DNA of 64,000 nucleotides, from the sequence record PP456879.1; one strand, given 5' to 3'. A model generated the notes under the pieces. That model was not told where the DNA came from. It searched no databases and saw only the letters and a list, made by a program, of their open reading frames with translations. Below, piece after piece: positions 5,592 through 40,237 of this stretch. Position numbers and translations under genes: made by a program. Numbering within the stretch: the first letter of the stretch is position 1; the number at the start of each line of letters is the position of its first letter.

Positions 5592-5768
5592 ATGCCTAGT
5601 AAAAGTAAAAAACAACATAACTTCATGGCTGCTGTAGCCAATGATAAGAAGTTTGCTAAGAAAGTTGGTGTACCACAATCAGTTGGTAAAGACTTTGTTG
5701 AGGCTGATAAAAATAAAAAGAGTTTTGAAAGTGTTTCACTTAATAGCACTTATAAAGATAGTTACTAA
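5592..5768 (+). CDS. Small basic protein, 58 aa (MPSKSKKQHNFMAAVANDKKFAKKVGVPQSVGKDFVEAD...)
   Basis: Hand-translated, below the track cutoff; AGAGGA SD and an immediate downstream terminator. Confidence 0.8.
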   Translation: MPSKSKKQHNFMAAVANDKKFAKKVGVPQSVGKDFVEADKNKKSFESVSLNSTYKDSY

Positions 5769-5774
5769 TATAAT

Positions 5775-5795
5775 GCCCTCCCATTGCGGGAGGGC
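5775..5795. terminator. Bidirectional hairpin terminator
   Basis: GCCCTCCC-attgc-GGGAGGGC between convergent genes. Confidence 0.85.
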
Positions 5796-5810
5796 TTATG
5801 TTGCTTATAA

Positions 5811-8303
5811 TTATTTTAATACTAGATTTTTATTAAATACTTCTGGAGTACTAATATTAGCTGGATCAAGTACAATAAATTCAGCTTGGTTAAATGCACC
5901 GTGTGTTGATTCAAAGTGGCTGATGAAGAACACTTGATTAACAATGCCATTTTCAATTAACCTGTTAATGAATGGAATAGCATTGGCTCGATGTTGTTCA
6001 TCAAAAGTCCTGCTAAATTCATCTAAGAAAAGGGGCATGTCATCTAGATGTAAAAATTTCAAGATAGCCATTCTAAAAGCAAAATCAACAATCTCTAATT
6101 GTGAGTCAGACCCGTATTCAATGTCCGGTGGCTGAACGTCACCACCTGCAATATGCATTGGGAACTTATAATCCATGCCATCTTTGTCAACATTAGAAGG
6201 TAATACTTCTAACCTATAAGTCCAAATCTCATTGATGTATGCATTTACTAGTTTAACTACTCCTTGTAAGAAACCTAATAAATAGCGACCAAGAATACCA
6301 CTTTTTGGTGATAATGCTTTTTCAAGAATAGCTAAATCAGTAGCCATTTGTTGTGCATGGTTAACTTCTGATTCTAAAACTTTAATACGTTCTTCATGAC
6401 GTTCCATTTCACTTAAACGACTATGCACACTAGATAGTTCTAAGTTAACAGCATCAATCTCTGCTTGGTATGCCTTATCTACAAAGTTATCAGCTGTATC
6501 CACTATCTTTTTAATAAACTGCTCCCATCGTTCAATAAAAGAATGATACTTATCTTCCCATTCACGAATAGCATTACCAGCTTTATTGAAATGAGATGCT
6601 TTTCTTTGTAAGTCAGCTGCTACATGTGTTTTATTATTAATTTCAGTTTCTAGTGCAGTTGTACGTGCCTTAATGAACTCTAATGCATCTTGATCCATCT
6701 CAGCAATAACACGTAGTCGTTGAGCTAATAAAGTAGCTTCCGCATGAGCTTGCTTAGAGACAATGAGTTGCTGCATTGCATCTCGCCAGTCTAATGCATC
6801 ATTTATATATTTTGCTGGTGTGCGATACATTACGACATGTTCAGCTACATAGTTCCATAATGTATCAAATTCGTTATACTCTTTCGTTAATTGAACGTAG
6901 CCATGTACATAACTTACATATTCATTGAAGTCAGTCATGTACTGTTCAAGAACCTTGATCTCATTTGAACAGCTATCCATCGCTTCATCTAACTTAGCTT
7001 TGCGCTCTTCTGCTATTGTGATATCTTGTTCACTAACACCAGGTTTAAATGAATGAGTGCATGATGGGCAAGTAATAGATGCGCATTCCTTAAATGAATT
7101 TAGGCGTTGATTAATTTGTAAATACATGCCTTCCATGGTTGAGTATTTACTTTTTAATTCTTTTAGCCTTTCTGCATTTTTAATAGCAGTTTCTTTACTT
7201 AAGTAACCATTCTCATTATTAGGAAATGTAGTGAGAAGTTTGATCCAACGATCTGAGAGATCAGTAAGTTTACCAGATGGATCACCGTTAACAGAAATGT
7301 CAACCAAAGGAAATCTACCGGTATACTTCTTATATTTACTAATAGCTTCTTCAGCAATGCGTGTATGATGTTCATGTCTGTCCTTAAGTTCTTGTATTTC
7401 TTCTGGAGACATACGTTCAGCTGTATTCGGATTAGAGCTTTTTAATTCTTCTAATTCTTCAACTAAACGTGCAATAACTGCTTGTATAGATTTATATTCT
7501 TCAATCTTCTTATTATTTAGTTCTAAGAAAGATTCATACCCATCTACTTTAACTTGAATAGGTAACATTGGAAATGACATTAACAATGAACGAGCTTCAT
7601 CTAAGATAGAATCTAATTCTTTACGTGCAGTGGTTTCATCTCTAAAATGAAGGACACCTTTCTTATCACGTGTTTTATAAAGTAAATCAATACGACTAAC
7701 TAACCGTTGTTTCACTTCTTTCAACTGTGTCATTTCTGAATCATTCAATACCCCATGGTGTTCTGTGACCAATCGCTTATTAATTGTTTTAACAGTACCT
7801 TGCTGGTTAGATAATTCTTTACGTACTTTGTTATAAACATTAAATGCATAATCAAGGTTAACTACAGACATTCTAGTTAACCATGCTTTACGTTCATTAG
7901 GTTTTAACTTTGTAAAACGCATCTTACCTGTCAACATTTCATGCAGTTCTCGGTTTAACCCGAAATGCGCCATTACAAGTTCTTCTTGTTCTTTAAAGGT
8001 ATGACCACTATTTAATTCTTCATCATTACATAAAAAGGAATGATGTCCAGTGCCACGGTTATATTTAGAAATTAATTTATAGTCTTTACCATTTGCATGA
8101 CAATGGAAATGTTTCTCGCCACCTTGCTTGAAGTTTGAACTGCTAGATACAACAGGTGTCAGTTCACTAATAATAGATGATTTGCCAGAACCATTACTAC
8201 CAAGTATAACCATCATCTGTTTGCTTGGAGTCCATTCAAAATAATGTGTATTATTGGCCATCAACCTAGTATAGCCAATTAGCTTAAGTAGCTTGATCTG
8301 CAT
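5811..8303 (-). CDS. sbcC: SbcC/Rad50-like SMC ATPase (phiKZ gp165-like)
   Basis: Walker A GSNGSGKSS, long coiled coil with central CPSC zinc hook, Walker B LFLDEF, H-loop ISH. Confidence 0.9.
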   Translation of the reverse strand: MQIKLLKLIGYTRLMANNTHYFEWTPSKQMMVILGSNGSGKSSIISELTPVVSSSSNFKQGGEKHFHCHANGKDYKLISKYNRGTGHHSFLCNDEELNSGHTFKEQEELVMAHFGLNRELHEMLTGKMRFTKLKPNERKAWLTRMSVVNLDYAFNVYNKVRKELSNQQGTVKTINKRLVTEHHGVLNDSEMTQLKEVKQRLVSRIDLLYKTRDKKGVLHFRDETTARKELDSILDEARSLLMSFPMLPIQVKVDGYESFLELNNKKIEEYKSIQAVIARLVEELEELKSSNPNTAERMSPEEIQELKDRHEHHTRIAEEAISKYKKYTGRFPLVDISVNGDPSGKLTDLSDRWIKLLTTFPNNENGYLSKETAIKNAERLKELKSKYSTMEGMYLQINQRLNSFKECASITCPSCTHSFKPGVSEQDITIAEERKAKLDEAMDSCSNEIKVLEQYMTDFNEYVSYVHGYVQLTKEYNEFDTLWNYVAEHVVMYRTPAKYINDALDWRDAMQQLIVSKQAHAEATLLAQRLRVIAEMDQDALEFIKARTTALETEINNKTHVAADLQRKASHFNKAGNAIREWEDKYHSFIERWEQFIKKIVDTADNFVDKAYQAEIDAVNLELSSVHSRLSEMERHEERIKVLESEVNHAQQMATDLAILEKALSPKSGILGRYLLGFLQGVVKLVNAYINEIWTYRLEVLPSNVDKDGMDYKFPMHIAGGDVQPPDIEYGSDSQLEIVDFAFRMAILKFLHLDDMPLFLDEFSRTFDEQHRANAIPFINRLIENGIVNQVFFISHFESTHGAFNQAEFIVLDPANISTPEVFNKNLVLK

Positions 8304-24469: not shown

Positions 24470-27400
24470 TTAAATAACAGCACCTTTGGAAACTATCCAG
24501 TTAGTACCATCCCATAAGAGGGTAAGAACTGTTTTAGTATCACCTAGGTCATCTACTATTACTGGAGTACCATTGTTCCATTGTAACACTGCACTAGAAA
24601 GTGTTGGCATAGCTACCTTACCAAGCAATACAAGAACAGCTGTGATCATACGATCAACAGGTCCATTCTCTAGTGTAATGGTTTGGTTAGCAGCAGTTTG
24701 AACCCTATAGCACTGTTGGTTAGCTGGTGTTAGAGTTAAAGCTGTACCAGTGAATGTACTTGATTTTAGGCTATATGCATCGAATGATTTATCTAGCTTC
24801 TTCCAAGTAATATTAGTACCAGTACGGCTACGTAGCCAATCACCATCAGCGGTTACATCATTATTCGGCCCTTGGAATAGAGTCCATGATTTAGCCGCAG
24901 CATTACGTAGGAATAGTTGTCCACTAGTAGCATCAGCTTGATCAACTATAATAGTTACAGGTGTCCATTTAGAACCACTAGCTGTTTTCTCACGTACATA
25001 GTTAGTGCCATTAGCACCTTCACTAGGTACTTCACCAATAACTGCGGCTGGTACAGCTACCCATTCACCATTTTGCATACCCATTAGAGTATCATCGGTT
25101 TGCAGAGGTGCTACATCAACCCAGTTACCAGCTACACGACCTTGAGGCTTAGTAGCTTGTGCAGTATCGCGTACTACATCTGAAGGAATTTCTGGGAATG
25201 TAATGGTAGCCCATTCAGTTTCACCCCCTGCAATACCTTTACGAACGTATTGTGCATTAACAACTGGACTAGGTACAGCATCAATGGCAGGTGTTGGTAA
25301 TTCAATAGCAGTCCATTCAACAGCCCCGTCAGCGGTTGCTTTACGGCGACCATAGAAGACACCTACTTCAGCATCTACCACCTCATCAACAGGTAGTTCA
25401 GTCCAACCGAGTTTGTACCGAACCATTTTCTTATCGACATCTTCTGGATCGACTTCACTAACTGGAACTGACATTAATTTGTAGAATACAACCCAGTTAG
25501 CATCTTTATACCAAACGGTACCAGTTTTGTCGATACACCAGTCACCACGATTACCATCGATAGAAGTGGGTGCAGTTTGACCTTCAGGTAGAATTACCCA
25601 AGAGGATCCACGTTCACCTTTCTGACCGGTTTTACCAGGGATACCTGGAACACCTTGTTTGCCCTCAGGACCTTCAGGACCCTGCGGACCCATGGCTAAG
25701 ACACCTAGGCTTTCCCAAGTAAATGTACCTTCAGTATCGATACTTACAAATACTTCTACTTGTCCTTCAGTATTGGTGCGAATGGCAATACCTTTACCTA
25801 CGTTATCAGCAGATGCTACTGGTTTACCAGCATCATCACCAACATAGATAATTAATAGACCACCACCTTGTTTACCTTCAGGACCTTGTGGGCCTTCGAC
25901 ACCCTGGATACCCTGCTCACCATTTAGATTAATTGGGCCGATATAGCCATCAATTTCCTGACCTTGGTAAGTATAGAGCATTGTACCTTCGTTAGTTTCA
26001 ACCCAGTATGAATCACCAGTTACTAAGTCAGGATCAGTGTCTTTCTTTGGTAGTTGTGAAGCATCGGTTAAAACACCTTTAATGTTTAAACCTTCACCCG
26101 GTTTACCTTGCGGACCTGCCATAATACCAATGCTAGTCCAGCGACTACCGTCCATGTTAACAAATACTTCGCCCGTGGACTTAACAGTATATGCTTTCCA
26201 TTGGTTATCGGCAAGTGCTTCTGGTGGGGTATCTTCAGGAGTGTCAATCGCTGCGATGATCTGGATAGGTTCACCAGCGGGACCTTGTGGGCCTTCTGGT
26301 CCCTCGGGTCCTTCTGGTCCCTGATCACCGTCTTTACCAGGTGCGCCATCTTCACCTTTAGGACCTCGATGTGTACCACTATTTACCCAATTACCATCTA
26401 TCTTAACAAATAAGGTAGATGTGTCTTGTGTGAAGTACGCTGCCTGATCAGGAGCATCTGCCGGCAGGGCTGCCTCATTGGCAACAGCACCAGTAATAAC
26501 TACGTTCTTACCATGTAGACTGATTAACCATTCACCCTCAGTACCAGTGAAGCCATTGTCCAATGCTACTTGGAAAGCCGATTTACCTTGTGCCCCTGGT
26601 TCACCAGGTAGACCTTGTTCGCCATCTTCACCTTGCGGACCTTCAGGGCCCTGCGGGCCACGGAATGAACCCATGGCTGTCCATGAGATATCAACAGTCG
26701 GATCTTGGCCAGTCAGTACATAAACCGTATTGGTGGAACGTACTGAAACACCTTGGTATTGTTCTACACCAGTGGTGGTTAATAGATCATCAGCAGTTTC
26801 AACTGCTTTAACTACTTCTAAGTTACGACCTTGTGGACCAGGTTCACCTTGTTTACCATCGGGACCCGGATCACCTGTATTACCTGGTTTACCTTGTGGG
26901 CCCTCAGGGCCTTGGAAAGTACCTAGGTCTGACCATGCCCCTTTTACAAAGATGAATAGATGTTCTGGTTTACCAGCTTCCATAGTAACTAAGTATGCTT
27001 CTGATTCTTTAGCTACAGATGGATCAGGTAAATCAGCTGGTGATGGTAGTGAATCCTTAATGGTAAACGGCATTGCTGGTTCACCCTGAGGACCTTCAGG
27101 ACCAATTTCACCATCTTTACCTTGCGGACCCTCAGGGCCCTCAGGTCCACGTTCACCCTGTGGTGTAACTGGGAACCAATCATAGTCATCAATAGTTGGA
27201 TTCTCTGGCGGATTATTACCTGAGATAAGCATCCACGCCCAGAGTTGATTATTCCATGAGTAAGCATCTCCAGGTTTATTACTTTCAGTCTTAGGTAATT
27301 CTAAGTTATTAGGCCAACGACCACGGATAACCAGACCAGTACCATCTGGACCACGAAGTGAACCTGTTTCAACCCAACGACCTTTTACAGGGGGATCTTC

Positions 27401-27751
27401 ATTACCTAGCGGTGATTCCCATACCCATAGCCGATCTTCAACGAACCAAGCATCACCGACATTATGCGTATCTAATGGTTTAATATCTTGTTCGAATGTT
27501 GCTAGATCAACATTAGCGATAATGTTAATAGCCGGACCAACTGGGCCAGGGGGACCTTGATCGCCATCTTTACCCGGCTGACCATCTTCACCCTTTAATC
27601 CAGGTATAGTAACAGGATCAACGAAAGTGGTATTAAGACCCACCCCGGTAGAAACCGGGATGTGTCCATTAACTACAGAAGTGGGTTCATCAATTGATGA
27701 TACCCGTTTGGGGAGTTCCCCGTTTACATAATCTTCAAATGCAGAAGCCAT
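24470..27751 (-). CDS. Collagen-like fibre protein (phiKZ gp146-like)
   Basis: 1093 aa; about eight Gly-X-Y runs alternating with ~50-60-aa globular modules; C-terminal YVR..W repeats. Confidence 0.85.
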   Translation of the reverse strand: MASAFEDYVNGELPKRVSSIDEPTSVVNGHIPVSTGVGLNTTFVDPVTIPGLKGEDGQPGKDGDQGPPGPVGPAINIIANVDLATFEQDIKPLDTHNVGDAWFVEDRLWVWESPLGNEDPPVKGRWVETGSLRGPDGTGLVIRGRWPNNLELPKTESNKPGDAYSWNNQLWAWMLISGNNPPENPTIDDYDWFPVTPQGERGPEGPEGPQGKDGEIGPEGPQGEPAMPFTIKDSLPSPADLPDPSVAKESEAYLVTMEAGKPEHLFIFVKGAWSDLGTFQGPEGPQGKPGNTGDPGPDGKQGEPGPQGRNLEVVKAVETADDLLTTTGVEQYQGVSVRSTNTVYVLTGQDPTVDISWTAMGSFRGPQGPEGPQGEDGEQGLPGEPGAQGKSAFQVALDNGFTGTEGEWLISLHGKNVVITGAVANEAALPADAPDQAAYFTQDTSTLFVKIDGNWVNSGTHRGPKGEDGAPGKDGDQGPEGPEGPEGPQGPAGEPIQIIAAIDTPEDTPPEALADNQWKAYTVKSTGEVFVNMDGSRWTSIGIMAGPQGKPGEGLNIKGVLTDASQLPKKDTDPDLVTGDSYWVETNEGTMLYTYQGQEIDGYIGPINLNGEQGIQGVEGPQGPEGKQGGGLLIIYVGDDAGKPVASADNVGKGIAIRTNTEGQVEVFVSIDTEGTFTWESLGVLAMGPQGPEGPEGKQGVPGIPGKTGQKGERGSSWVILPEGQTAPTSIDGNRGDWCIDKTGTVWYKDANWVVFYKLMSVPVSEVDPEDVDKKMVRYKLGWTELPVDEVVDAEVGVFYGRRKATADGAVEWTAIELPTPAIDAVPSPVVNAQYVRKGIAGGETEWATITFPEIPSDVVRDTAQATKPQGRVAGNWVDVAPLQTDDTLMGMQNGEWVAVPAAVIGEVPSEGANGTNYVREKTASGSKWTPVTIIVDQADATSGQLFLRNAAAKSWTLFQGPNNDVTADGDWLRSRTGTNITWKKLDKSFDAYSLKSSTFTGTALTLTPANQQCYRVQTAANQTITLENGPVDRMITAVLVLLGKVAMPTLSSAVLQWNNGTPVIVDDLGDTKTVLTLLWDGTNWIVSKGAVI

Positions 27752-32924: not shown

Positions 32925-33488
32925 TTAAACAATCCTAGTAAGGTAGTAGTAAGCTATCGCACAAGCATCCATAGAGTGGTCATCTAGACTATCTATATCG
33001 ATGTTCCATGTGATGTCAGTACGAGAACGCATTGCTTCTTTAACATCATCTTTAGTAGTACCCTTTACTTTTTTCATACCCGCATTGATTTTAACTGTAG
33101 TAGGATCAATCATGTATAAAGGTATAAATCTATCATACTCGTATAATGCTCTATGTACATAGGTCACACATTCTACAAGTACAGCGAAGCTTTGGGCAAA
33201 CTTACCAAGATAGTTAGACTCTACAATAACTGCATGTGGTTTTTCAGTATGTAGTATATTTAGTACCACATCACTCATTTGCTGCATTCTAGTAAATCTA
33301 CTACCATGAACCTCGGAGATGGCAGCATATGCCGGATTTGTATCTTTAAGGTGGCAGGTAAATGCATTACGTACCACCTTATTACTTCCATCCAACTTAT
33401 CTTCCAGAATAGCTATGCCGAGGTTTTGTGAACCAGGGTCTAATGCTAGTACCCGAAATGGCTCATCACTCGCTGGAAGCTTAAGCAT
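32925..33488 (-). CDS. ruvC: RuvC-like Holliday junction resolvase
   Basis: VLALDPGSQNLGIA, VIVES, K..VK, D..DACAIA motif order. Confidence 0.85.
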   Translation of the reverse strand: MLKLPASDEPFRVLALDPGSQNLGIAILEDKLDGSNKVVRNAFTCHLKDTNPAYAAISEVHGSRFTRMQQMSDVVLNILHTEKPHAVIVESNYLGKFAQSFAVLVECVTYVHRALYEYDRFIPLYMIDPTTVKINAGMKKVKGTTKDDVKEAMRSRTDITWNIDIDSLDDHSMDACAIAYYYLTRIV

Positions 33489-33490
33489 AT

Positions 33491-34417
<927 letters not shown>

Positions 34418-34453
34418 TTAGTACACTGTACTATTGAGTAAATTTGTAAGAGT

Positions 34454-34473
34454 TCCCCTCCACATGGAGGGGA
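34454..34473 (-). terminator. Hairpin terminator
   Basis: TCCCCTCC-acat-GGAGGGGA. Confidence 0.8.
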
Positions 34474-34482
34474 TTTATGCTG

Positions 34483-34971
34483 TTAAGCAAATTTTTCAGG
34501 AGCACCACGTACCATTACACAGATCCATGATTGTCCATTATGGGAACGTTTTACTTCATGTAATTGGGATAGATGGAATACTAATCCTTCACCTTTTCCA
34601 ATTAATAGTTCCTCACCATCTAAAATGAACTTAGCATCAGGTCCAATATTCCAAGCAAGAATAGTACCGGACTCGGGTTTATCTACCCAATAATTCATCT
34701 CATCTAGAAATCCATCTATTTTGGGGAAATCTAAAAACCATACTTGCAGTGCTTTGTTAAATAGTTCTTCGCCTAAAATTGGCTTAATTTCTTTACGCTG
34801 TTTAGCAGTCCAATTAAACCATTTTGAAGTATTATAAACACTACATGCTTTAAGGCCATTAGTGCCAACTCGCATACGGTGGCCATATGAGTCTCTAAAT
34901 GAAACTTCGCCTTTAAGCTTTGTTAATGTTTTTAGTTCTGCCTTAGATAGAGTCTTAAGTTTAATTGCCAT
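34483..34971 (-). CDS. Degenerate 2OG-Fe(II) oxygenase/cupin-fold protein
   Basis: C-terminal GxGLVF...LHEV resembles its neighbour, but HxD and the 2OG-binding Arg are absent. Confidence 0.55.
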   Translation of the reverse strand: MAIKLKTLSKAELKTLTKLKGEVSFRDSYGHRMRVGTNGLKACSVYNTSKWFNWTAKQRKEIKPILGEELFNKALQVWFLDFPKIDGFLDEMNYWVDKPESGTILAWNIGPDAKFILDGEELLIGKGEGLVFHLSQLHEVKRSHNGQSWICVMVRGAPEKFA

Positions 34972-34979
34972 GTTGTACC

Positions 34980-35462
34980 CTACTCGTAGAGATATATAAG
35001 GACGTATCTTTTATTTTTAACTGGAGGGACTTCATGTGGCTCTGAACGGATTGGAAAAATAGTAGCCCTACCTGGTACATCCTGATAAAACTCACCATTG
35101 ATCGTTATACCATCGCCATTGTCATTTAATGCAATAACCATGTTGTAACGATAAACAGCTTGGTCGATGTGTTCAGGCATACCTGTACCAATTTCATATC
35201 GGTTGATTAGAACTTCGCCTAACCAAGCACCTTCTACCTTAGGTGCAATATGAAATAGTAATTCCCGTAATTCCACTGGCATTTGGTTATGACCTAAAAA
35301 CCAATAATCACATTCAGTGATACCTTTGGTTGGGATACTATTAATTTTTTTCCGATTAAACCACCAGGAATCACCCAGTGTATCCAGATAAGATACAAGG
35401 TCAGCTGCAAATTCAGCTGAAAACACGTCCCTGGTCGATCTTTCGTGGGCCGATAAGCTCAT
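34980..35462 (-). CDS. 2OG-Fe(II) dioxygenase (AlkB/prolyl hydroxylase-like fold)
   Basis: INRY..G..MPEHID (HxD), PHEV..VK..RYVL (distal His, Arg); likely start MSLSAH at 35462 with AGGTGG SD. Confidence 0.85.
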   Translation of the reverse strand: MSLSAHERSTRDVFSAEFAADLVSYLDTLGDSWWFNRKKINSIPTKGITECDYWFLGHNQMPVELRELLFHIAPKVEGAWLGEVLINRYEIGTGMPEHIDQAVYRYNMVIALNDNGDGITINGEFYQDVPGRATIFPIRSEPHEVPPVKNKRYVLIYLYE

Positions 35463-36015
35463 GCAGGCCACCTGCATATCGATGTGCTTTCTCAGCGTCG
35501 AGATCTTCCCTGGATTTATAGATAACGTCTGGGCTCTCAATTAGGGCCTCCTTATGCGCGCGATTAGTTCGTTTAACAAGATCAATATAATCAAGCATTT
35601 CTTCTAGTTCATCTAACTCTTGACCATATTTTTCAGCTAGCTGTTTAATTGCACGTGCAAGGATATTAATTTGCTCAGCCACTGGATAGCGTTCAGTAAT
35701 TTTGTAGGCCACTTTACTATTTAAGTGATCTTCAGTAATCACTTGTGGCGCTTCTTCTTTAGGAACAATCTTCCAATCAGAAAGGGTAGGTTGTTTACCA
35801 GGTGTATTACTTACGACTACATCATAAGTACCCATTTCTGCTTCAACAAAAATGGTGTGCTCACGTGACTTAGCATCAAATGCATCTAAAGGTAGATAGC
35901 CCACGCTTTGTAGGAATACCTCAGAAGTACGGTTAAACATTAATAGTACTTTTACTTTATCTTCAGTAGGTGCAGTAGCTAAAGATAGTTCTTGGAGTGA
36001 TAACGGATTATTCAT
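35413..36015 (-). CDS. Probable tail fibre assembly chaperone
   Basis: Start MNNPLS at 36015 (TAATG overlap); RYPVAEQINIL resembles the YPxxxEQL motif of fibre chaperones; follows the fibre genes. Confidence 0.5.
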   Translation of the reverse strand: MNNPLSLQELSLATAPTEDKVKVLLMFNRTSEVFLQSVGYLPLDAFDAKSREHTIFVEAEMGTYDVVVSNTPGKQPTLSDWKIVPKEEAPQVITEDHLNSKVAYKITERYPVAEQINILARAIKQLAEKYGQELDELEEMLDYIDLVKRTNRAHKEALIESPDVIYKSREDLDAEKAHRYAGGLHELIGPRKIDQGRVFS

Positions 36016-37406
36016 TATACAAGTGCTCCAGCTCGAATCATCCAACGCCATGTACCATTATTTCTAACTGCTACATATTGCTGGTAATAATAGGCTTCAA
36101 AGGGGGTATTAGTTCTAACACCTACAACAGCGTAAGTGCCTTCAGGATATTTGGTATTATCTGTAAACATCGTATTTAACGTGTTTAATGCTTCTGCTTC
36201 ACTATTTACCTGACCTAAGGTAATGGCTTTAATCTTATCTTTGTTCCACTCTTTAAAAGCTTCAACCCAGTCTTGCCAAGTACCATCGCTCGCTAGATAA
36301 TATCTCTCAGGGTCATTTAATATTGATGCATTACCTTTACCTAATGCATTCCATTTAAATACGCCACTAGTTACTTCTTCAGCTGGAATATCTTTTCGAA
36401 CATCATTCCAGAAATTCTGATATACCTTACCTGTTCCAGTAACTGGATAACCCTGACTATTAGTAGTAGCACCAATAGTGGTCGCATTAGCAGCTTGTTC
36501 ATTAATACCTAATAATGGAGTTATTTTAGAATCCATCACTGGTTTGGTATATGATCCAACTTGGTCAGCTGTGACAGCATGTGGGTTATTAAAGTTTTTA
36601 ATATGTGCTGCAAGTTTAGCCAACGTATCAATATTAAGAATACGATAAATACCACCAATTGGCATGTATTTATTATTTACGTTTCTATTAACTGATTCAG
36701 CTTCAGTAGCAAAACCCCAGTTGGATATCTTATCAAGCGGTGGAATTAACTTGAATCGATCATCAGCATGCGGATTATTATAATCAGTTAAGTGTGCTGT
36801 AACTCGATCTCTATAATCGTCCACAGCGGTTTTTGCATCAGTGAGATAAACTTTATAATAATCATCGGCAGCATTATCCATGGCACTTCTACCGACCCGA
36901 TAAGCGTGTGCTATTCGGTTTAATTCAGTTACCATTGTATCTGTGCCATAAATCTGCCAATATTCATGGCCGTGAGGTGCAGGCGGATATGCATCGGGTT
37001 TACCAATAATATCATCCCAAGTGAAACTTAATTCATCTAATTCAAGTTTATCAAAAACAGCTTTAAGTTCTAATGCTGAAATACTAAAGAAACCACCAAC
37101 TGCTCTATATGTAACTTGGACATTAGGACTAACATTAGGATCAGTTACTACAACAATACCCATTACTTCTAAGCCAGTCATTTCAGATAACTGTGAATAA
37201 AGATAGGTTGTTTTATATTGATCTTTGTTTAAAGATAAACCAGTCTTCTTATCACGTAGATTAAAGTCCTTAGTATAAAAACCACCATGTGTACACATAA
37301 GTACGCGATGTGTTTTATTATTGACTTGAATAAGTGTGTGATCCTCATCTACAATGTAATTAGATGCCAATTTAGCTTTTAGATCTAATGGTAAAAAAGT
37401 AATCAT
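36015..37406 (-). CDS. Tail fibre/baseplate protein, gp131 family (gp135-like)
   Basis: Shared N-domain, HxxxxxNPH repeats. Confidence 0.8.
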   Translation of the reverse strand: MITFLPLDLKAKLASNYIVDEDHTLIQVNNKTHRVLMCTHGGFYTKDFNLRDKKTGLSLNKDQYKTTYLYSQLSEMTGLEVMGIVVVTDPNVSPNVQVTYRAVGGFFSISALELKAVFDKLELDELSFTWDDIIGKPDAYPPAPHGHEYWQIYGTDTMVTELNRIAHAYRVGRSAMDNAADDYYKVYLTDAKTAVDDYRDRVTAHLTDYNNPHADDRFKLIPPLDKISNWGFATEAESVNRNVNNKYMPIGGIYRILNIDTLAKLAAHIKNFNNPHAVTADQVGSYTKPVMDSKITPLLGINEQAANATTIGATTNSQGYPVTGTGKVYQNFWNDVRKDIPAEEVTSGVFKWNALGKGNASILNDPERYYLASDGTWQDWVEAFKEWNKDKIKAITLGQVNSEAEALNTLNTMFTDNTKYPEGTYAVVGVRTNTPFEAYYYQQYVAVRNNGTWRWMIRAGALV

Positions 37407-38779
37407 TATGCCGGTTCCCCTATATTAGTCCACGTTGATCCAACTTTACGTAGGAATAGAGTATTCCTATAGGAAGTAGCTGTTGTACCATTGCCATGTC
37501 CAATAACGAATTCTTGATCGTAATGGCAAATAGCTAACGAACCAGGCCACCATTGTTCAGGATCTGAGAAGTATGTGTTATGGAAAGCAATTGCTTCTTG
37601 AATAGACTTAAAGTTGGTGTTATTCCAGTGGACCATCGTTCCTGTTTTTTGGAAGCGATTAAATATAAAACCGAAATGAGTCCATTGACCATTAGGCATC
37701 AATGTCCAATCACGGCCTGGCCAGGTAGCTGAATTACCAATCCTACCAGGTGCTAGTCGACCAGTCGTCAATACACTTAAAGGCATTTTAGCACGTACTG
37801 TTTCACCCATGCTATAAACATCTTGACCAAATAAAAGTTTAGACGTATTGGCTGTTTTACCTTTATCTAATTTTTGATTTAGTAAAATATTAGCTTGAGT
37901 AACAGTATACGTATTTAATTGTTCAGCCGTTACCCTGTGTGGGTTAGTGGTGACATCATTAACGTGTGCCAGATATTGAACTGTATAATTGGTATCAACT
38001 GATAACTTCATTGACCATGGCGTAGCATAGACATTCATGATAGCGCCATTTGGCTGTTTGGCTTGTGTTTCAGTTGCAATGCCAGCATTATAAACATTAC
38101 CTAATGCCACTTGCCCTTTACGTGTCTGGTGTGGGTTAGTGGTGGTATCATTGATGTGTGTAGTAAGTCGTGCTTCAATTGTATTAAGATCAGCTTCTAT
38201 TAGACTTAACTGATATTTAAACTCATCTAAAATGGAGTCATATGAGTCTGATGAGCTTTTCTTTAATAAGTCAGTTATTTCTTTTAACTTAACAACTCTA
38301 GGCGTAAAACCATAAAGTTCCCAATAGGCATGCATATGTCCATTAGGTTTAAATTGGTCAGGAATATCTAAAATATTAGACCAATGTGGTTTACGGGTAT
38401 TATTTAAAAGAGCGTTAGCATGCTCAGATATGGAAGGGGCAAGGTTACAGTATATACCACCGCACATCTGAGCATCAATGTAAATATCCTCGTGGACATC
38501 TTGTTTTGTAATAACAATTACTGAACACGCTTCAAGTCCAGTCTTCTCGATTACTTCTGGATTAATACCAGTACACTGATAATCCATTTCTGGATTTAAC
38601 TCATTCTGCCTACCATCTCTGATAACCATTCCTTTAGTGTAAAAGTAACCCTTATCCATCACGATGATGCGATAGGGGAATCCTTTCTGTTTTGCTAGTG
38701 AATGGTATTCACCCTTTGTTCGGTTACTATAACTCTCTCCAGTTTCATCAAATGGAAGAGGTAAAAGTAATGGATTCAT
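37406..38779 (-). CDS. Tail fibre/baseplate protein, gp131 family (gp134-like)
   Basis: LPFDxxG N-terminus, NPH repeats. Confidence 0.8.
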   Translation of the reverse strand: MNPLLLPLPFDETGESYSNRTKGEYHSLAKQKGFPYRIIVMDKGYFYTKGMVIRDGRQNELNPEMDYQCTGINPEVIEKTGLEACSVIVITKQDVHEDIYIDAQMCGGIYCNLAPSISEHANALLNNTRKPHWSNILDIPDQFKPNGHMHAYWELYGFTPRVVKLKEITDLLKKSSSDSYDSILDEFKYQLSLIEADLNTIEARLTTHINDTTTNPHQTRKGQVALGNVYNAGIATETQAKQPNGAIMNVYATPWSMKLSVDTNYTVQYLAHVNDVTTNPHRVTAEQLNTYTVTQANILLNQKLDKGKTANTSKLLFGQDVYSMGETVRAKMPLSVLTTGRLAPGRIGNSATWPGRDWTLMPNGQWTHFGFIFNRFQKTGTMVHWNNTNFKSIQEAIAFHNTYFSDPEQWWPGSLAICHYDQEFVIGHGNGTTATSYRNTLFLRKVGSTWTNIGEPA

Positions 38780-38790
38780 CTAAACTATCC

Positions 38791-40179
38791 TTATGGAATT
38801 ACCCAGCCACCTTGTGAACGGAAACACACGTAGTTAGGAGTATAATCAACGAAAATCAATCCGTTACCAGCTGCCTGGATTTTCTGTTCTTTAATAGTGA
38901 AGAATACAGTAGATCCAATAGGCCATGCATCTGGATTAGTGAAGTTAGTTCTACAGAAATCTAATGCTGCTTGCACGGATGGTTGTAATCCTAGTGCATA
39001 AAACTTTAACTTAACCGGATATGAATACTCTGTGGCTAATTGATCAAAGTGTGTAAAAATACCATTCCCACGGAGTGGTGCTTTCCATTGTCCCATTGCC
39101 CCGGAACCAATCCGATTTATATTGATGACATTACTCTGGCCATCGCCAGCTGTAAAGTTCACGTCTGTGTCAAAGTTCTTACGCATCCACCAAATAAGAT
39201 CGCTATAACCCATTAAAGTAGCAGTTGGTTGCCCTTTAGGTTTATAATAAACCATATTAGTATTAGCTACTGTATCAGTCTTTAAATATTTACCAGTAAT
39301 TCGTGAATCAAAATCACTTTTCAAATACGACTGTACATGCGTATTTTTGACTTTATGTGGATTATCACGGCGAGCTATGTGGGCATTAAGTGGTTTTATA
39401 GCTATTTCATCTAATACGCCATATGCTAACTGCGGTGTTAGATAATGTGCATTAGATTGACCTAGTTGAGCAATGGCTGGAGTAGCCAATGGAAAGTTAT
39501 TAACTAAACCTAGTTCAACATTAGTTGGGGTAATCTTGTGTGGATTAGCTTTATCTTGAATATGTTTTTCTAGGCGATCATTAAATTTCTTTAAGAACTC
39601 ATCATAAATCTCTTTAACTTTACTACGGTATTCATCTTCACCGCTTGTATCACCAGTCATGAGTGCCTGTGTTATCCACTCCATCTCGTTATTATAAGGC
39701 TGATACGTATCAAGATGCCATCGTTCGCCAACTAACTCACCGTCTTTCCAATATGGTTCGTTACCAGTGTAGTCGAGATCTTTTGGCTTTGGCTTACCAT
39801 TTGTTTTCCACCAGTTAATATAATCGTCGATAACTGTGAAACTAAACGCTAGATCACCGCCTACCATGTGAGCTGAAGTATACACTATTGGTGTACTAGG
39901 TGTTTTTAAGAAAACAATTGCTGAACATATTTCTTGACCGACATACGCACTAGCATCTTTGTGATAATAAGTAACAATATAATCAATATCTTTAACTAAA
40001 CGATTATATTTACCATCATAAACTTCTAACCCTTTTGTATAGAATCCACCATGATATAACTTGATGATTCTATAGTCGAATCCCTGATACTGAACTAGAG
40101 TATGAGGCTCGCTACCAATGAAACAATCTGGATTTGTACCTAATGGATCAAATGGTAATTGTAAAATAGGATTATACAT
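38791..40179 (-). CDS. Tail fibre/baseplate protein, gp131 family (gp133-like)
   Basis: LPFDPLGTNP N-terminus, NPHKITPTNVELGLVNN repeats. Confidence 0.8.
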   Translation of the reverse strand: MYNPILQLPFDPLGTNPDCFIGSEPHTLVQYQGFDYRIIKLYHGGFYTKGLEVYDGKYNRLVKDIDYIVTYYHKDASAYVGQEICSAIVFLKTPSTPIVYTSAHMVGGDLAFSFTVIDDYINWWKTNGKPKPKDLDYTGNEPYWKDGELVGERWHLDTYQPYNNEMEWITQALMTGDTSGEDEYRSKVKEIYDEFLKKFNDRLEKHIQDKANPHKITPTNVELGLVNNFPLATPAIAQLGQSNAHYLTPQLAYGVLDEIAIKPLNAHIARRDNPHKVKNTHVQSYLKSDFDSRITGKYLKTDTVANTNMVYYKPKGQPTATLMGYSDLIWWMRKNFDTDVNFTAGDGQSNVININRIGSGAMGQWKAPLRGNGIFTHFDQLATEYSYPVKLKFYALGLQPSVQAALDFCRTNFTNPDAWPIGSTVFFTIKEQKIQAAGNGLIFVDYTPNYVCFRSQGGWVIP

Positions 40180-40208: not shown

Positions 40209-40237
40209 AAGAGACACAGCTTTTGGCTGTGTCTCTT
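40209..40237 (-). terminator. Hairpin terminator
   Basis: AAGAGACACAGC-ttttg-GCTGTGTCTCTT. Confidence 0.8.

Follow-up and report, generated by a model that had tools for sequence, protein, structure and literature searches.

A three-gene cassette next to the fibre genes

We analysed a 64,000-nucleotide stretch of sequence record PP456879.1 (hereafter the window) with a focus on positions 34483–36015, where three genes on the minus strand encode a predicted Fe(II)/2-oxoglutarate (2OG) oxygenase, a catalytically dead paralogue of that enzyme and a small, very acidic protein. By sequence the window belongs to a phiKZ-type phage: positions 33400–37500 match Pseudomonas phage vB_Pae10145-KEN51 at 100% identity and phiKZ at 99.1%. 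According to the phiKZ record, the three genes are PHIKZ138, PHIKZ137 and PHIKZ136 (here gp138, gp137 and gp136, in order of increasing position). The fibre genes gp131–135 lie 5′ of gp136, and gp138 is followed on its 3′ side by gp139 (DUF7208), a RuvC-like gene, the spanin genes and the endolysin gene gp144. We find that gp136, gp137 and gp138 make up a strict three-gene cassette, newly described here, whose members are adjacent and keep one order; hidden Markov models (HMMs) found this in 49 of 49 loci, which comprise 46 IMG/VR loci fetched with a gp137 profile and three annotated genomes. The trio is a conserved accessory cassette of tail-fibre loci and travels with one C-terminal tip domain of about 85 amino acids (aa).

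The initial annotation had described the oxygenase pair as translationally linked to all of gp131–135. The coupling of gp135 to gp138 is upheld: the stop codon of gp135 and the start codon of gp136 overlap in the sequence TAATG, gp137 starts 50 nucleotides (nt) inside gp136 and gp138 starts 8 nt past the gp137 stop codon. The extension of this link to gp131 is less likely, as a terminator-like hairpin with a T-run, found by consensus scan only, separates gp132 from gp133 (positions 40209–40237, minus strand; 12-bp stem with six GC pairs and a TTTGCTGTTT tail). Because of this site, a transcription unit spanning gp133–138 appears more likely on sequence grounds than one spanning gp131–138. At the other end of the cassette, 10 nt past the gp138 stop codon, a GC-rich hairpin at positions 34454–34473, listed without a strand, has an 8-bp stem and a 4-nt loop; its T-run is on the plus-strand side only, and for minus-strand transcripts it is a terminator only putatively.

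gp137 is a predicted prolyl/lysyl-hydroxylase-type oxygenase

gp137 (positions 34980–35462, minus strand; 160 aa) was assigned to the Fe(II)/2OG oxygenases of the prolyl hydroxylase domain (PHD), prolyl 4-hydroxylase (P4H) and PiuC type on the basis of Pfam, invariant residues, an AlphaFold2 model and fold matches. It contains the motifs PEHID, PHEV and KRYVL, as the initial annotation had described. The Pfam family 2OG-FeII_Oxy_3 (PF13640) matches gp137 with an E-value of 1.6e-5 and 26.2 bits, below the cut-off of 27, and a precomputed PF13640 match is carried by some of its relatives, of which we found 64. Residues N87, Y89, G92, H98, D100, H143 and R152 are 100% conserved, in 24 relatives as well as in 42 distinct cassette copies. 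Among them are the complete facial triad of the form H-x-D/E…H (H98, D100 and H143) and the basic residue that binds the C5-carboxylate of 2OG, R152, which is located on the final strand of the model (residues 152–159). The spacing of +9 from the distal His to the Arg matches that of PHD2.

The AlphaFold2 model of gp137, with a predicted local distance difference test (pLDDT) score of 91.9, is a compact double-stranded β-helix. It has 247 matches in the PDB at E ≤ 0.001, which are oxygenases throughout among the matches listed. The best of these by Foldseek and VIA-align are the PiuC-like structure 3dkq (Z 15.5), the Pseudomonas putida EF-Tu prolyl hydroxylase (Z 15.2) and PHD2 (Z 14.6), with the lysyl hydroxylase LH3, the PBCV-1 collagen prolyl hydroxylase and OGFOD1 as further near neighbours. 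ALKBH6 and ALKBH5 are interleaved in this list, 1–2 Z units lower than the PiuC-like, P4H, PHD2 and LH3 structures. The model is that of a complete Fe(II)/2OG active site in a protein prolyl/lysyl hydroxylase fold, and we consider gp137 to be a minimal prolyl/lysyl-hydroxylase-type oxygenase whose activity is predicted from its sequence. A scan of 185,579 bacterial genomes with one pattern, the sensitivity of which is low enough that absence from prophages is not proven, returned no relative of gp137. Our literature search found no mention of phiKZ gp137 or PHIKZ137.

In RefSeq/Pharokka-style annotation, gp137 and its relatives are called 'DNA endonuclease' in at least 20 phage records. We rejected this label, which originates in PHROG 2297 and was copied by RefSeq, as all family and fold matches listed are oxygenases, and it should be corrected. 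It probably spread from mislabelled cyanophage proteins, because a β-helix protein named 'DNA endonuclease V' is among the structural neighbours of gp137.

gp138 is a pseudo-oxygenase and gp136 a third, acidic member

gp138 (positions 34483–34971, minus strand) contains GFLDEMNYWVD, LHEV and SWICV, in line with the initial annotation. A Pfam search with gp138 gave no match and BLASTP detected no similarity between gp137 and gp138; their relation is therefore visible only by profiles and structures. Alignment of the two family profiles with hhalign gave a probability of 91.4% (135 columns, E = 9e-7) and aligned the two distal His residues with each other, and the AlphaFold2 model of gp138 (pLDDT 96.9) has the same fold and structural neighbours as gp137, with matches to PHD2 (Z 14.4, the best by VIA-align), 6n1f, P4H and AlkB homologues. 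A word-indexed protein search found no relatives of gp138, whereas a full HMMER search found 73 representatives.

In 41 distinct sequences of the gp138 family, G87, L89, D90, W95, H138 and W149 are invariant. At most one of the 41 contains HxD in any register, and the position of the 2OG-binding Arg is occupied by L, N or W, leaving the distal His as the only catalytic residue that is kept. The fold is thus that of the oxygenases, and the facial triad and Arg of an active enzyme are missing. Since the whole family is without HxD and Arg, yet holds other positions invariant, gp138 belongs by its sequence to an ancient pseudo-enzyme family, and is not a product of recent decay; the former active-site region of the family is still under strong constraint. 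Together with the invariant residues of gp137, this bears out the pairing of an intact with a degenerate 2OG oxygenase that had been proposed for the locus.

gp136 (positions 35413–36015, minus strand; about 170–200 aa) is found directly 5′ of the gp137 homologue in each of the 49 loci. Its isoelectric point (pI) ranges from 4.2 to 5.4 across the family, in which the alignment shows invariant F27, N28, G73, E95, N151, K155, G182 and E186 as well as a C-terminal EGG-x-H-E motif. BLASTP recovers homologues in the most distant genomes, Milchi (1e-25) and QdP_Psa3 (2e-11). We detected no Pfam family, no PDB chain and no relation to gp137 for this protein. The 'chaperone' of the initial annotation owes its label to position only, and neither gp136 nor gp138 has a Pfam, PHROG-function or PDB match to the fibre chaperones Tfa, gp38, gp57A and S74.

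Charge varies across the trio: gp136-like proteins are always acidic, gp137-like proteins are mildly acidic (median pI 5.8) and gp138-like proteins are mostly basic (median 8.6). An acidic gp137 accompanies a basic gp138 in 28 of 43 distinct cassettes, an acidic/basic pairing that is weakly suggestive of a gp137–gp138 complex.

The cassette recurs in several kinds of fibre locus

In the phage collection, gp137 is present in exactly 72 records and gp138 in exactly 72, all of them Pseudomonas phages, and the two genes are adjacent in every record among the matches listed for both. Among isolates, the cassette is limited to Pseudomonas phages. It occurs in at least four kinds of fibre locus (phiKZ-like, Milchi/Astolliot, QdP_Psa3 and metagenomic groups) and is placed within fibre/baseplate clusters in every lineage. 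Milchi/Astolliot genomes (about 175 kb, with T4-like baseplate genes) have, in order, baseplate wedge genes, a gene for a 181-aa 'tail collar fiber protein', the cassette and head–tail adaptor genes. The cassette of QdP_Psa3 (115 kb) lies 3′ of the gene for a 478-aa fibre with a PF12571 N terminus, that of 201phi2-1 (gp221–223) lies 3′ of gp216–220, and those of the metagenomic groups are flanked by fibre and baseplate genes according to PHROGs. The association of the trio with fibre genes claimed in the initial annotation therefore stands, with an intact cassette in 49 of 49 loci and several unrelated lineages represented; modification of the fibres, the second part of the same claim, is the best reading of this arrangement and is something that we infer.

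The cassette tracks a C-terminal tip domain

The genes directly 5′ of the cassette, gp135, gp134 and gp133 (positions 36015–40179, minus strand), encode paralogous fibre proteins (BLASTP 1e-25 to 1e-31). Each combines an N-terminal attachment domain like that of gp131 with a shaft in which the NPH motif occurs twice. In all these loci, the protein encoded 5′ of the cassette ends in ~85 residues that look alike. An iterative profile of this region, seeded only with metagenomic non-phiKZ sequences and used to search 2,708 open reading frames (ORFs), converged with 84 hits, and 84 of 84 end no more than 15 residues from the C terminus of their protein. In phiKZ, the profile identifies C-terminal tip domains on the minus strand in gp135 (residues ~378–456, positions 36039–36275; E = 4.6e-13), in gp134 (residues ~367–453, positions 37421–37681; E = 2e-18), which contains P-G-S and G-N-G, and in gp133 (residues ~376–462, positions 38794–39054; E = 5.5e-21), which contains P420-x-G-S, G-N439-G and G-W459. 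The conserved columns of the domain are a Gly, a P-x-G-T/S motif (P 88%, G 96%), a G-N-G motif (N 93%) and a terminal G-W (W 100%). The tip domain has no Pfam or PDB relatives, and ESM Atlas searches with the tip domain and gp136 gave weak leads under 0.9 ('phage tail protein', XkdW).

The distribution of the fibre proteins separates tip from body. Residues ~6–285 of gp135 are common to 254 phage records, most of which are without the cassette and whose hosts include Erwinia, Salmonella, Serratia, Vibrio, Ralstonia, Klebsiella and others. Beyond residue ~295, gp135 is matched solely in cassette-bearing Pseudomonas phages. The cassette therefore tracks the tip and not the fibre body, and it always lies directly 3′ of genes ending in the tip domain. 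On contig IMGVR_UViG_3300028383_000218 (L047, positions 5636–6443), three tandem genes that encode nothing but tip domains (85, 90 and 91 aa) have a gp136-like gene on one side and a 'long tail fibre distal subunit'-like gene on the other, an arrangement which suggests that tips can form a subunit of their own, probably a heterotrimer.

The NPH motifs of gp133–135 are ~62 residues apart (residues ~212 and ~274) and fall within the part that is conserved across jumbo phages of many hosts. They were rejected as a target of the oxygenase, being absent from Milchi, QdP_Psa3 and the metagenomic fibres.

Related fibres with other C termini have other genes at this position. The gp135 homologue of Escherichia phage Goslar (NC_048170.1; L062:4974–7022) carries a C-terminal Peptidase_S74 intramolecular chaperone according to the record note; the endolysin gene is directly 3′ of it and there is no cassette there. 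In Pseudomonas phage pPa_SNUABM_DT01 (hereafter DT01; MW735835.1; L061:4974–10822), a gp135-like fibre with a different C terminus is followed on the 3′ side by genes for a 168-aa JmjC_2/Cupin_2 protein with an HTD…H motif and a radical S-adenosylmethionine (SAM)/SPASM-like enzyme, and then by a gene for a Cys-rich 178-aa protein with CHTSCHTSCHS at its C terminus, a pair of unknown genes and another radical-SAM gene. This set looks from its sequence like different, possibly peptide-modifying, enzymes at the position that gp136–138 occupy in phiKZ. With different helpers at one position in phiKZ, Goslar and DT01, the position would therefore seem to encode what each C terminus needs. The presence of a non-homologous oxygenase-type gene in DT01 is a hint, independent of the cassette, at oxidative chemistry.

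The collagen-like protein is not a conserved partner

The initial annotation had put forward a collagen-like fibre encoded in the window as the substrate of the oxygenase. The protein is real: gp146 (positions 25601–27601, minus strand) contains 64 Gly-X-Y triplets in seven blocks, with Pro at Y in 12 and at X in 26. A role of gp137 as a prolyl (or lysyl) hydroxylase for gp146 would fit these triplets, and the structural neighbours of gp137 include the viral collagen prolyl/lysyl hydroxylases PBCV-1 vCPH and mimivirus L230 along with LH3. However, gp146 is eight genes from the cassette, past the hairpin and the lysis genes, and in the loci examined the cassette is never next to a collagen-like gene. 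Milchi has the cassette but no collagen-like ORF, defined as a run of at least six proper Gly-X-Y triplets. The Y position is P, Q or E in phiKZ, mostly K in PhiPA3 and Noxifer and D or N in 201phi2-1, with almost no Pro in the latter three, while the oxygenases of these phages are 50–57% identical; the collagen repeats therefore hold no conserved target residue. For a viral collagen hydroxylase, a substrate wherever the enzyme occurs and a conserved target are expected, and neither is found here. The collagen-like fibre is thus not borne out as the substrate, and we regard this role of gp137 as highly improbable.

G-D-K triplets dominate the gp146 homologues of PhiPA3 (L056) and Noxifer (L057): Lys fills the Y position of 29 of 68 triplets in the former and of 22 of 45 in the latter. 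Set against the Pro-rich repeats of phiKZ, this is a striking compositional switch inside one gene family.

Cassette products are not reported in virions

In the 201phi2-1 record, gp216–220, 224, 226–228 and 230 are marked as detected by virion mass spectrometry, whereas the cassette products gp221–223 are unmarked, and the phiKZ record has no structural note for gp136–138. A 2026 cryo-electron microscopy (cryo-EM) atlas of phiKZ lists 40 virion proteins and models the base of the fibre with three copies of gp131 and one each of gp133, gp134 and gp135, and the distal fibre is not resolved in it (PMC13250141). Its text does not mention gp136 or gp137 (PMC13250141; gp138 was not among the searched terms). 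None of the three cassette proteins has a signal peptide or a hydrophobic or membrane segment (maximum hydropathy 1.14), and they go unmentioned in the portion of the Grad-seq paper supplements that was accessible. We conclude that the cassette products are probably not part of the virion.

The phiKZ record attaches no structural note to gp139 (positions 33491–34387, minus strand; DUF7208, PHROG 3315), the gene on the other side of the cassette, but the homologous protein of 201phi2-1, gp224, is recorded as having been found in virions by mass spectrometry.

A proposed model for fibre-tip maturation

The explanation that we favour, tentatively, is that the cassette serves in the cytoplasm to mature the fibre tip, by a process that includes oxidative modification. 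We propose the ~85-aa C-terminal tip domain of gp133–135 as a better candidate for the substrate or client than the collagen-like fibre. Late in infection, gp137 would oxidize, most probably hydroxylate, a residue of the newly made tip domain; the best-conserved candidates are the Pro and the Asn of its P-x-G-T/S and G-N-G turns, respectively. gp138 would act as a non-catalytic substrate-holding or dimer partner, a role modelled by the dead second β-helix domain of OGFOD1/Tpa1, and the acidic gp136 may be a helper or adaptor. The modified tips would then fold or trimerize into the distal, receptor-facing end of the fibre, with gp136–138 staying behind in the cell. In its strongest form, in which a dedicated phage trio of oxygenase, pseudo-oxygenase and helper covalently hydroxylates the receptor-binding tips of the fibres, we consider the proposal doubtful.

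Several observations weigh against the proposal. The tip domain is a putative substrate, deduced from gene neighbourhood alone. The small-molecule enzymes PolD and PasI and AlkB homologues, within 1–2 Z units, are also structural neighbours of gp137, and therefore the fold does not fix the class of substrate. Direct comparison of two tip-domain groups by hhalign is weak (15% over 28 columns), such that the link between them depends on the iterative search. The candidate Pro and Asn are present in 88% and 93% of tip domains, not in all; G-N-G is absent from gp135 and the Pro is absent from gp220 of 201phi2-1. Finally, the region is represented in RNA-library contigs of four studies, which give its presence only and not timing, starts or ends.

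The same genes could instead serve the tip as trans-acting folding or assembly chaperones, in which the oxygenase folds are scaffolds and catalysis is incidental or works as an O2, Fe or 2OG sensor that gates assembly. Directly 3′ of the fibre genes is the classic place for a fibre chaperone, the homologous fibre of Goslar carries an intramolecular S74 chaperone instead, virion evidence for the trio is absent (201phi2-1 record; atlas text for gp136 and gp137) and gp138 proves that the fold can be used without catalysis. This explanation is nevertheless unlikely, as every Fe- or 2OG-binding residue is retained across gp137 sequences that are as little as about 33% identical, which is hard to explain without catalysis, and the proteins show no similarity to any known fibre chaperone family. 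It is very unlikely that gp137 and/or gp138 are themselves low-copy adhesins at the fibre tip, like gp38 of T2-type phages: mass spectrometry of 201phi2-1 virions notes the neighbours but not gp221–223, and an adhesin is not expected to have an intact Fe/2OG site. The idea draws on the distal fibre being unresolved in the cryo-EM atlas (PMC13250141) and on the one contig in which the cassette lies 3′ of a 'long tail fibre distal subunit'-like gene, the place of gp38 in T-even phages.

Two other readings place the substrate outside the fibre. If the oxygenase acted on a host molecule matched to the receptor specificity of the fibre, such as a surface-polysaccharide or pilus precursor, it would stop progeny from sticking to debris or exclude superinfection, hence its co-variation with the tip. 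That the cassette tracks the receptor-facing tip domain and not the fibre body, that among isolates only Pseudomonas phages have it and that the nearest solved structures include the Pseudomonas protein PiuC, itself connected with an uptake system of the outer membrane, would all be consistent with this. We consider it quite unlikely, however, given that signal peptides and membrane segments are missing from all three proteins (maximum hydropathy 1.14), that a dead paralogue and an acidic helper suit a protein client better and that the one pattern used found no relative in 185,579 bacterial genomes. That gp137 acts on nucleic acids, either as an oxygenase that repairs (AlkB-like) or modifies bases or as the 'DNA endonuclease' named in the databases, is scarcely credible. 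The PHROG 2297 label, the best PDB sequence-profile match of gp137 (ALKBH8, E = 0.01 over 34 residues) and the AlkB homologues within 1–2 Z units point this way, but there is no nuclease motif or fold, Pfam gives oxygenase families only and the listed fold matches are all oxygenases. Nor does gp137 resemble AlkB in particulars, with 160 aa, a model without a nucleotide-recognition lid and a single Arg at +9. AlkB proteins have the arrangement R-x5-R, and the spacing and single Arg of gp137 fit the PHD/P4H group instead. The genomic context, moreover, consists purely of fibre genes.

Implications and comparison with known systems

phiKZ is a model jumbo phage and a therapy candidate. A cassette that moves with the tip domain marks an exchangeable, probably receptor-facing fibre module, and it suggests that functional tips depend on three further proteins and possibly on O2, Fe and 2OG, which is of relevance to host-range engineering, recombinant fibre expression and phage production at low oxygen, as in biofilms and infected lungs. 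Phage genes for 2OG oxygenases are very common but have no demonstrated role, and the cassette gives them a concrete candidate function. If oxidative maturation of the tip proved true, it would be the first known case of enzymatic oxidation in the maturation of a bacteriophage adsorption organelle; our literature search found no paper that connects tail fibres, jumbo phages and hydroxylases, or tail fibres and 2OG oxygenases. With O2, Fe(II) and 2OG required for the reaction, how infective the progeny are would then depend on the oxygen, iron and carbon/nitrogen status of the host as it dies, and the JmjC-type oxygenase and radical-SAM genes of DT01 would represent a second, convergent version of the same principle.

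The closest viral structural neighbours outside the gp137 family are cyanophage 2OG-Fe(II) oxygenases (PHROG 61 and relatives), with template modelling (TM) scores of 0.6–0.76. These have been discussed as metabolic or DNA-repair genes, and neither pairing with a dead paralogue nor a link to fibre genes is reported for them (PMC3037559, PMC12774648). Mimivirus L230 and PBCV-1 vCPH, also structural neighbours of gp137, are viral 2OG oxygenases thought to modify the viruses' own surface fibres; they act on Gly-X-Y repeats, whereas the collagen-like protein of phiKZ is not a conserved partner of the cassette. Known fibre helpers, such as gp38 and gp57A of T4, Tfa of lambda and P2 and Peptidase_S74, are encoded at or after the 3′ end of the fibre gene, act on the C-terminal tip and are usually not in the virion. 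The cassette is likewise directly 3′ of a fibre gene with products undetected in virions, but it has no sequence or fold relation to these helpers, none of which is a redox enzyme.

The ribosomal prolyl hydroxylases OGFOD1, Tpa1 and Ofd1 combine one active and one inactive 2OG-oxygenase fold, as do gp137 and gp138, and the catalytic domain of OGFOD1 matches gp137 with Z 13.4; among the matches listed, gp138 has none to the inactive domain of OGFOD1. Both folds are fused in one chain in OGFOD1, Tpa1 and Ofd1, whereas in phiKZ they are encoded by two separate, adjacent genes. The PHD/P4H group (human PHD2, the P. putida enzyme PPHD acting on EF-Tu and PBCV-1 vCPH) and the PiuC-like proteins share with gp137 the β-helix, the H-x-D…H triad and the Arg at +9, with Z of 14–15.5 and a root mean square deviation of about 3 Å over about 150 residues. 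gp137 is smaller than these enzymes (160 versus 180–230 aa), is 14–20% identical to them and falls just under the Pfam cut-off. Its gene also differs from theirs in lying within a phage fibre locus, where those of a dead paralogue and a helper always accompany it; 2OG oxygenase, pseudo-oxygenase partner and helper together form a mobile accessory cassette for a phage fibre-tip domain.

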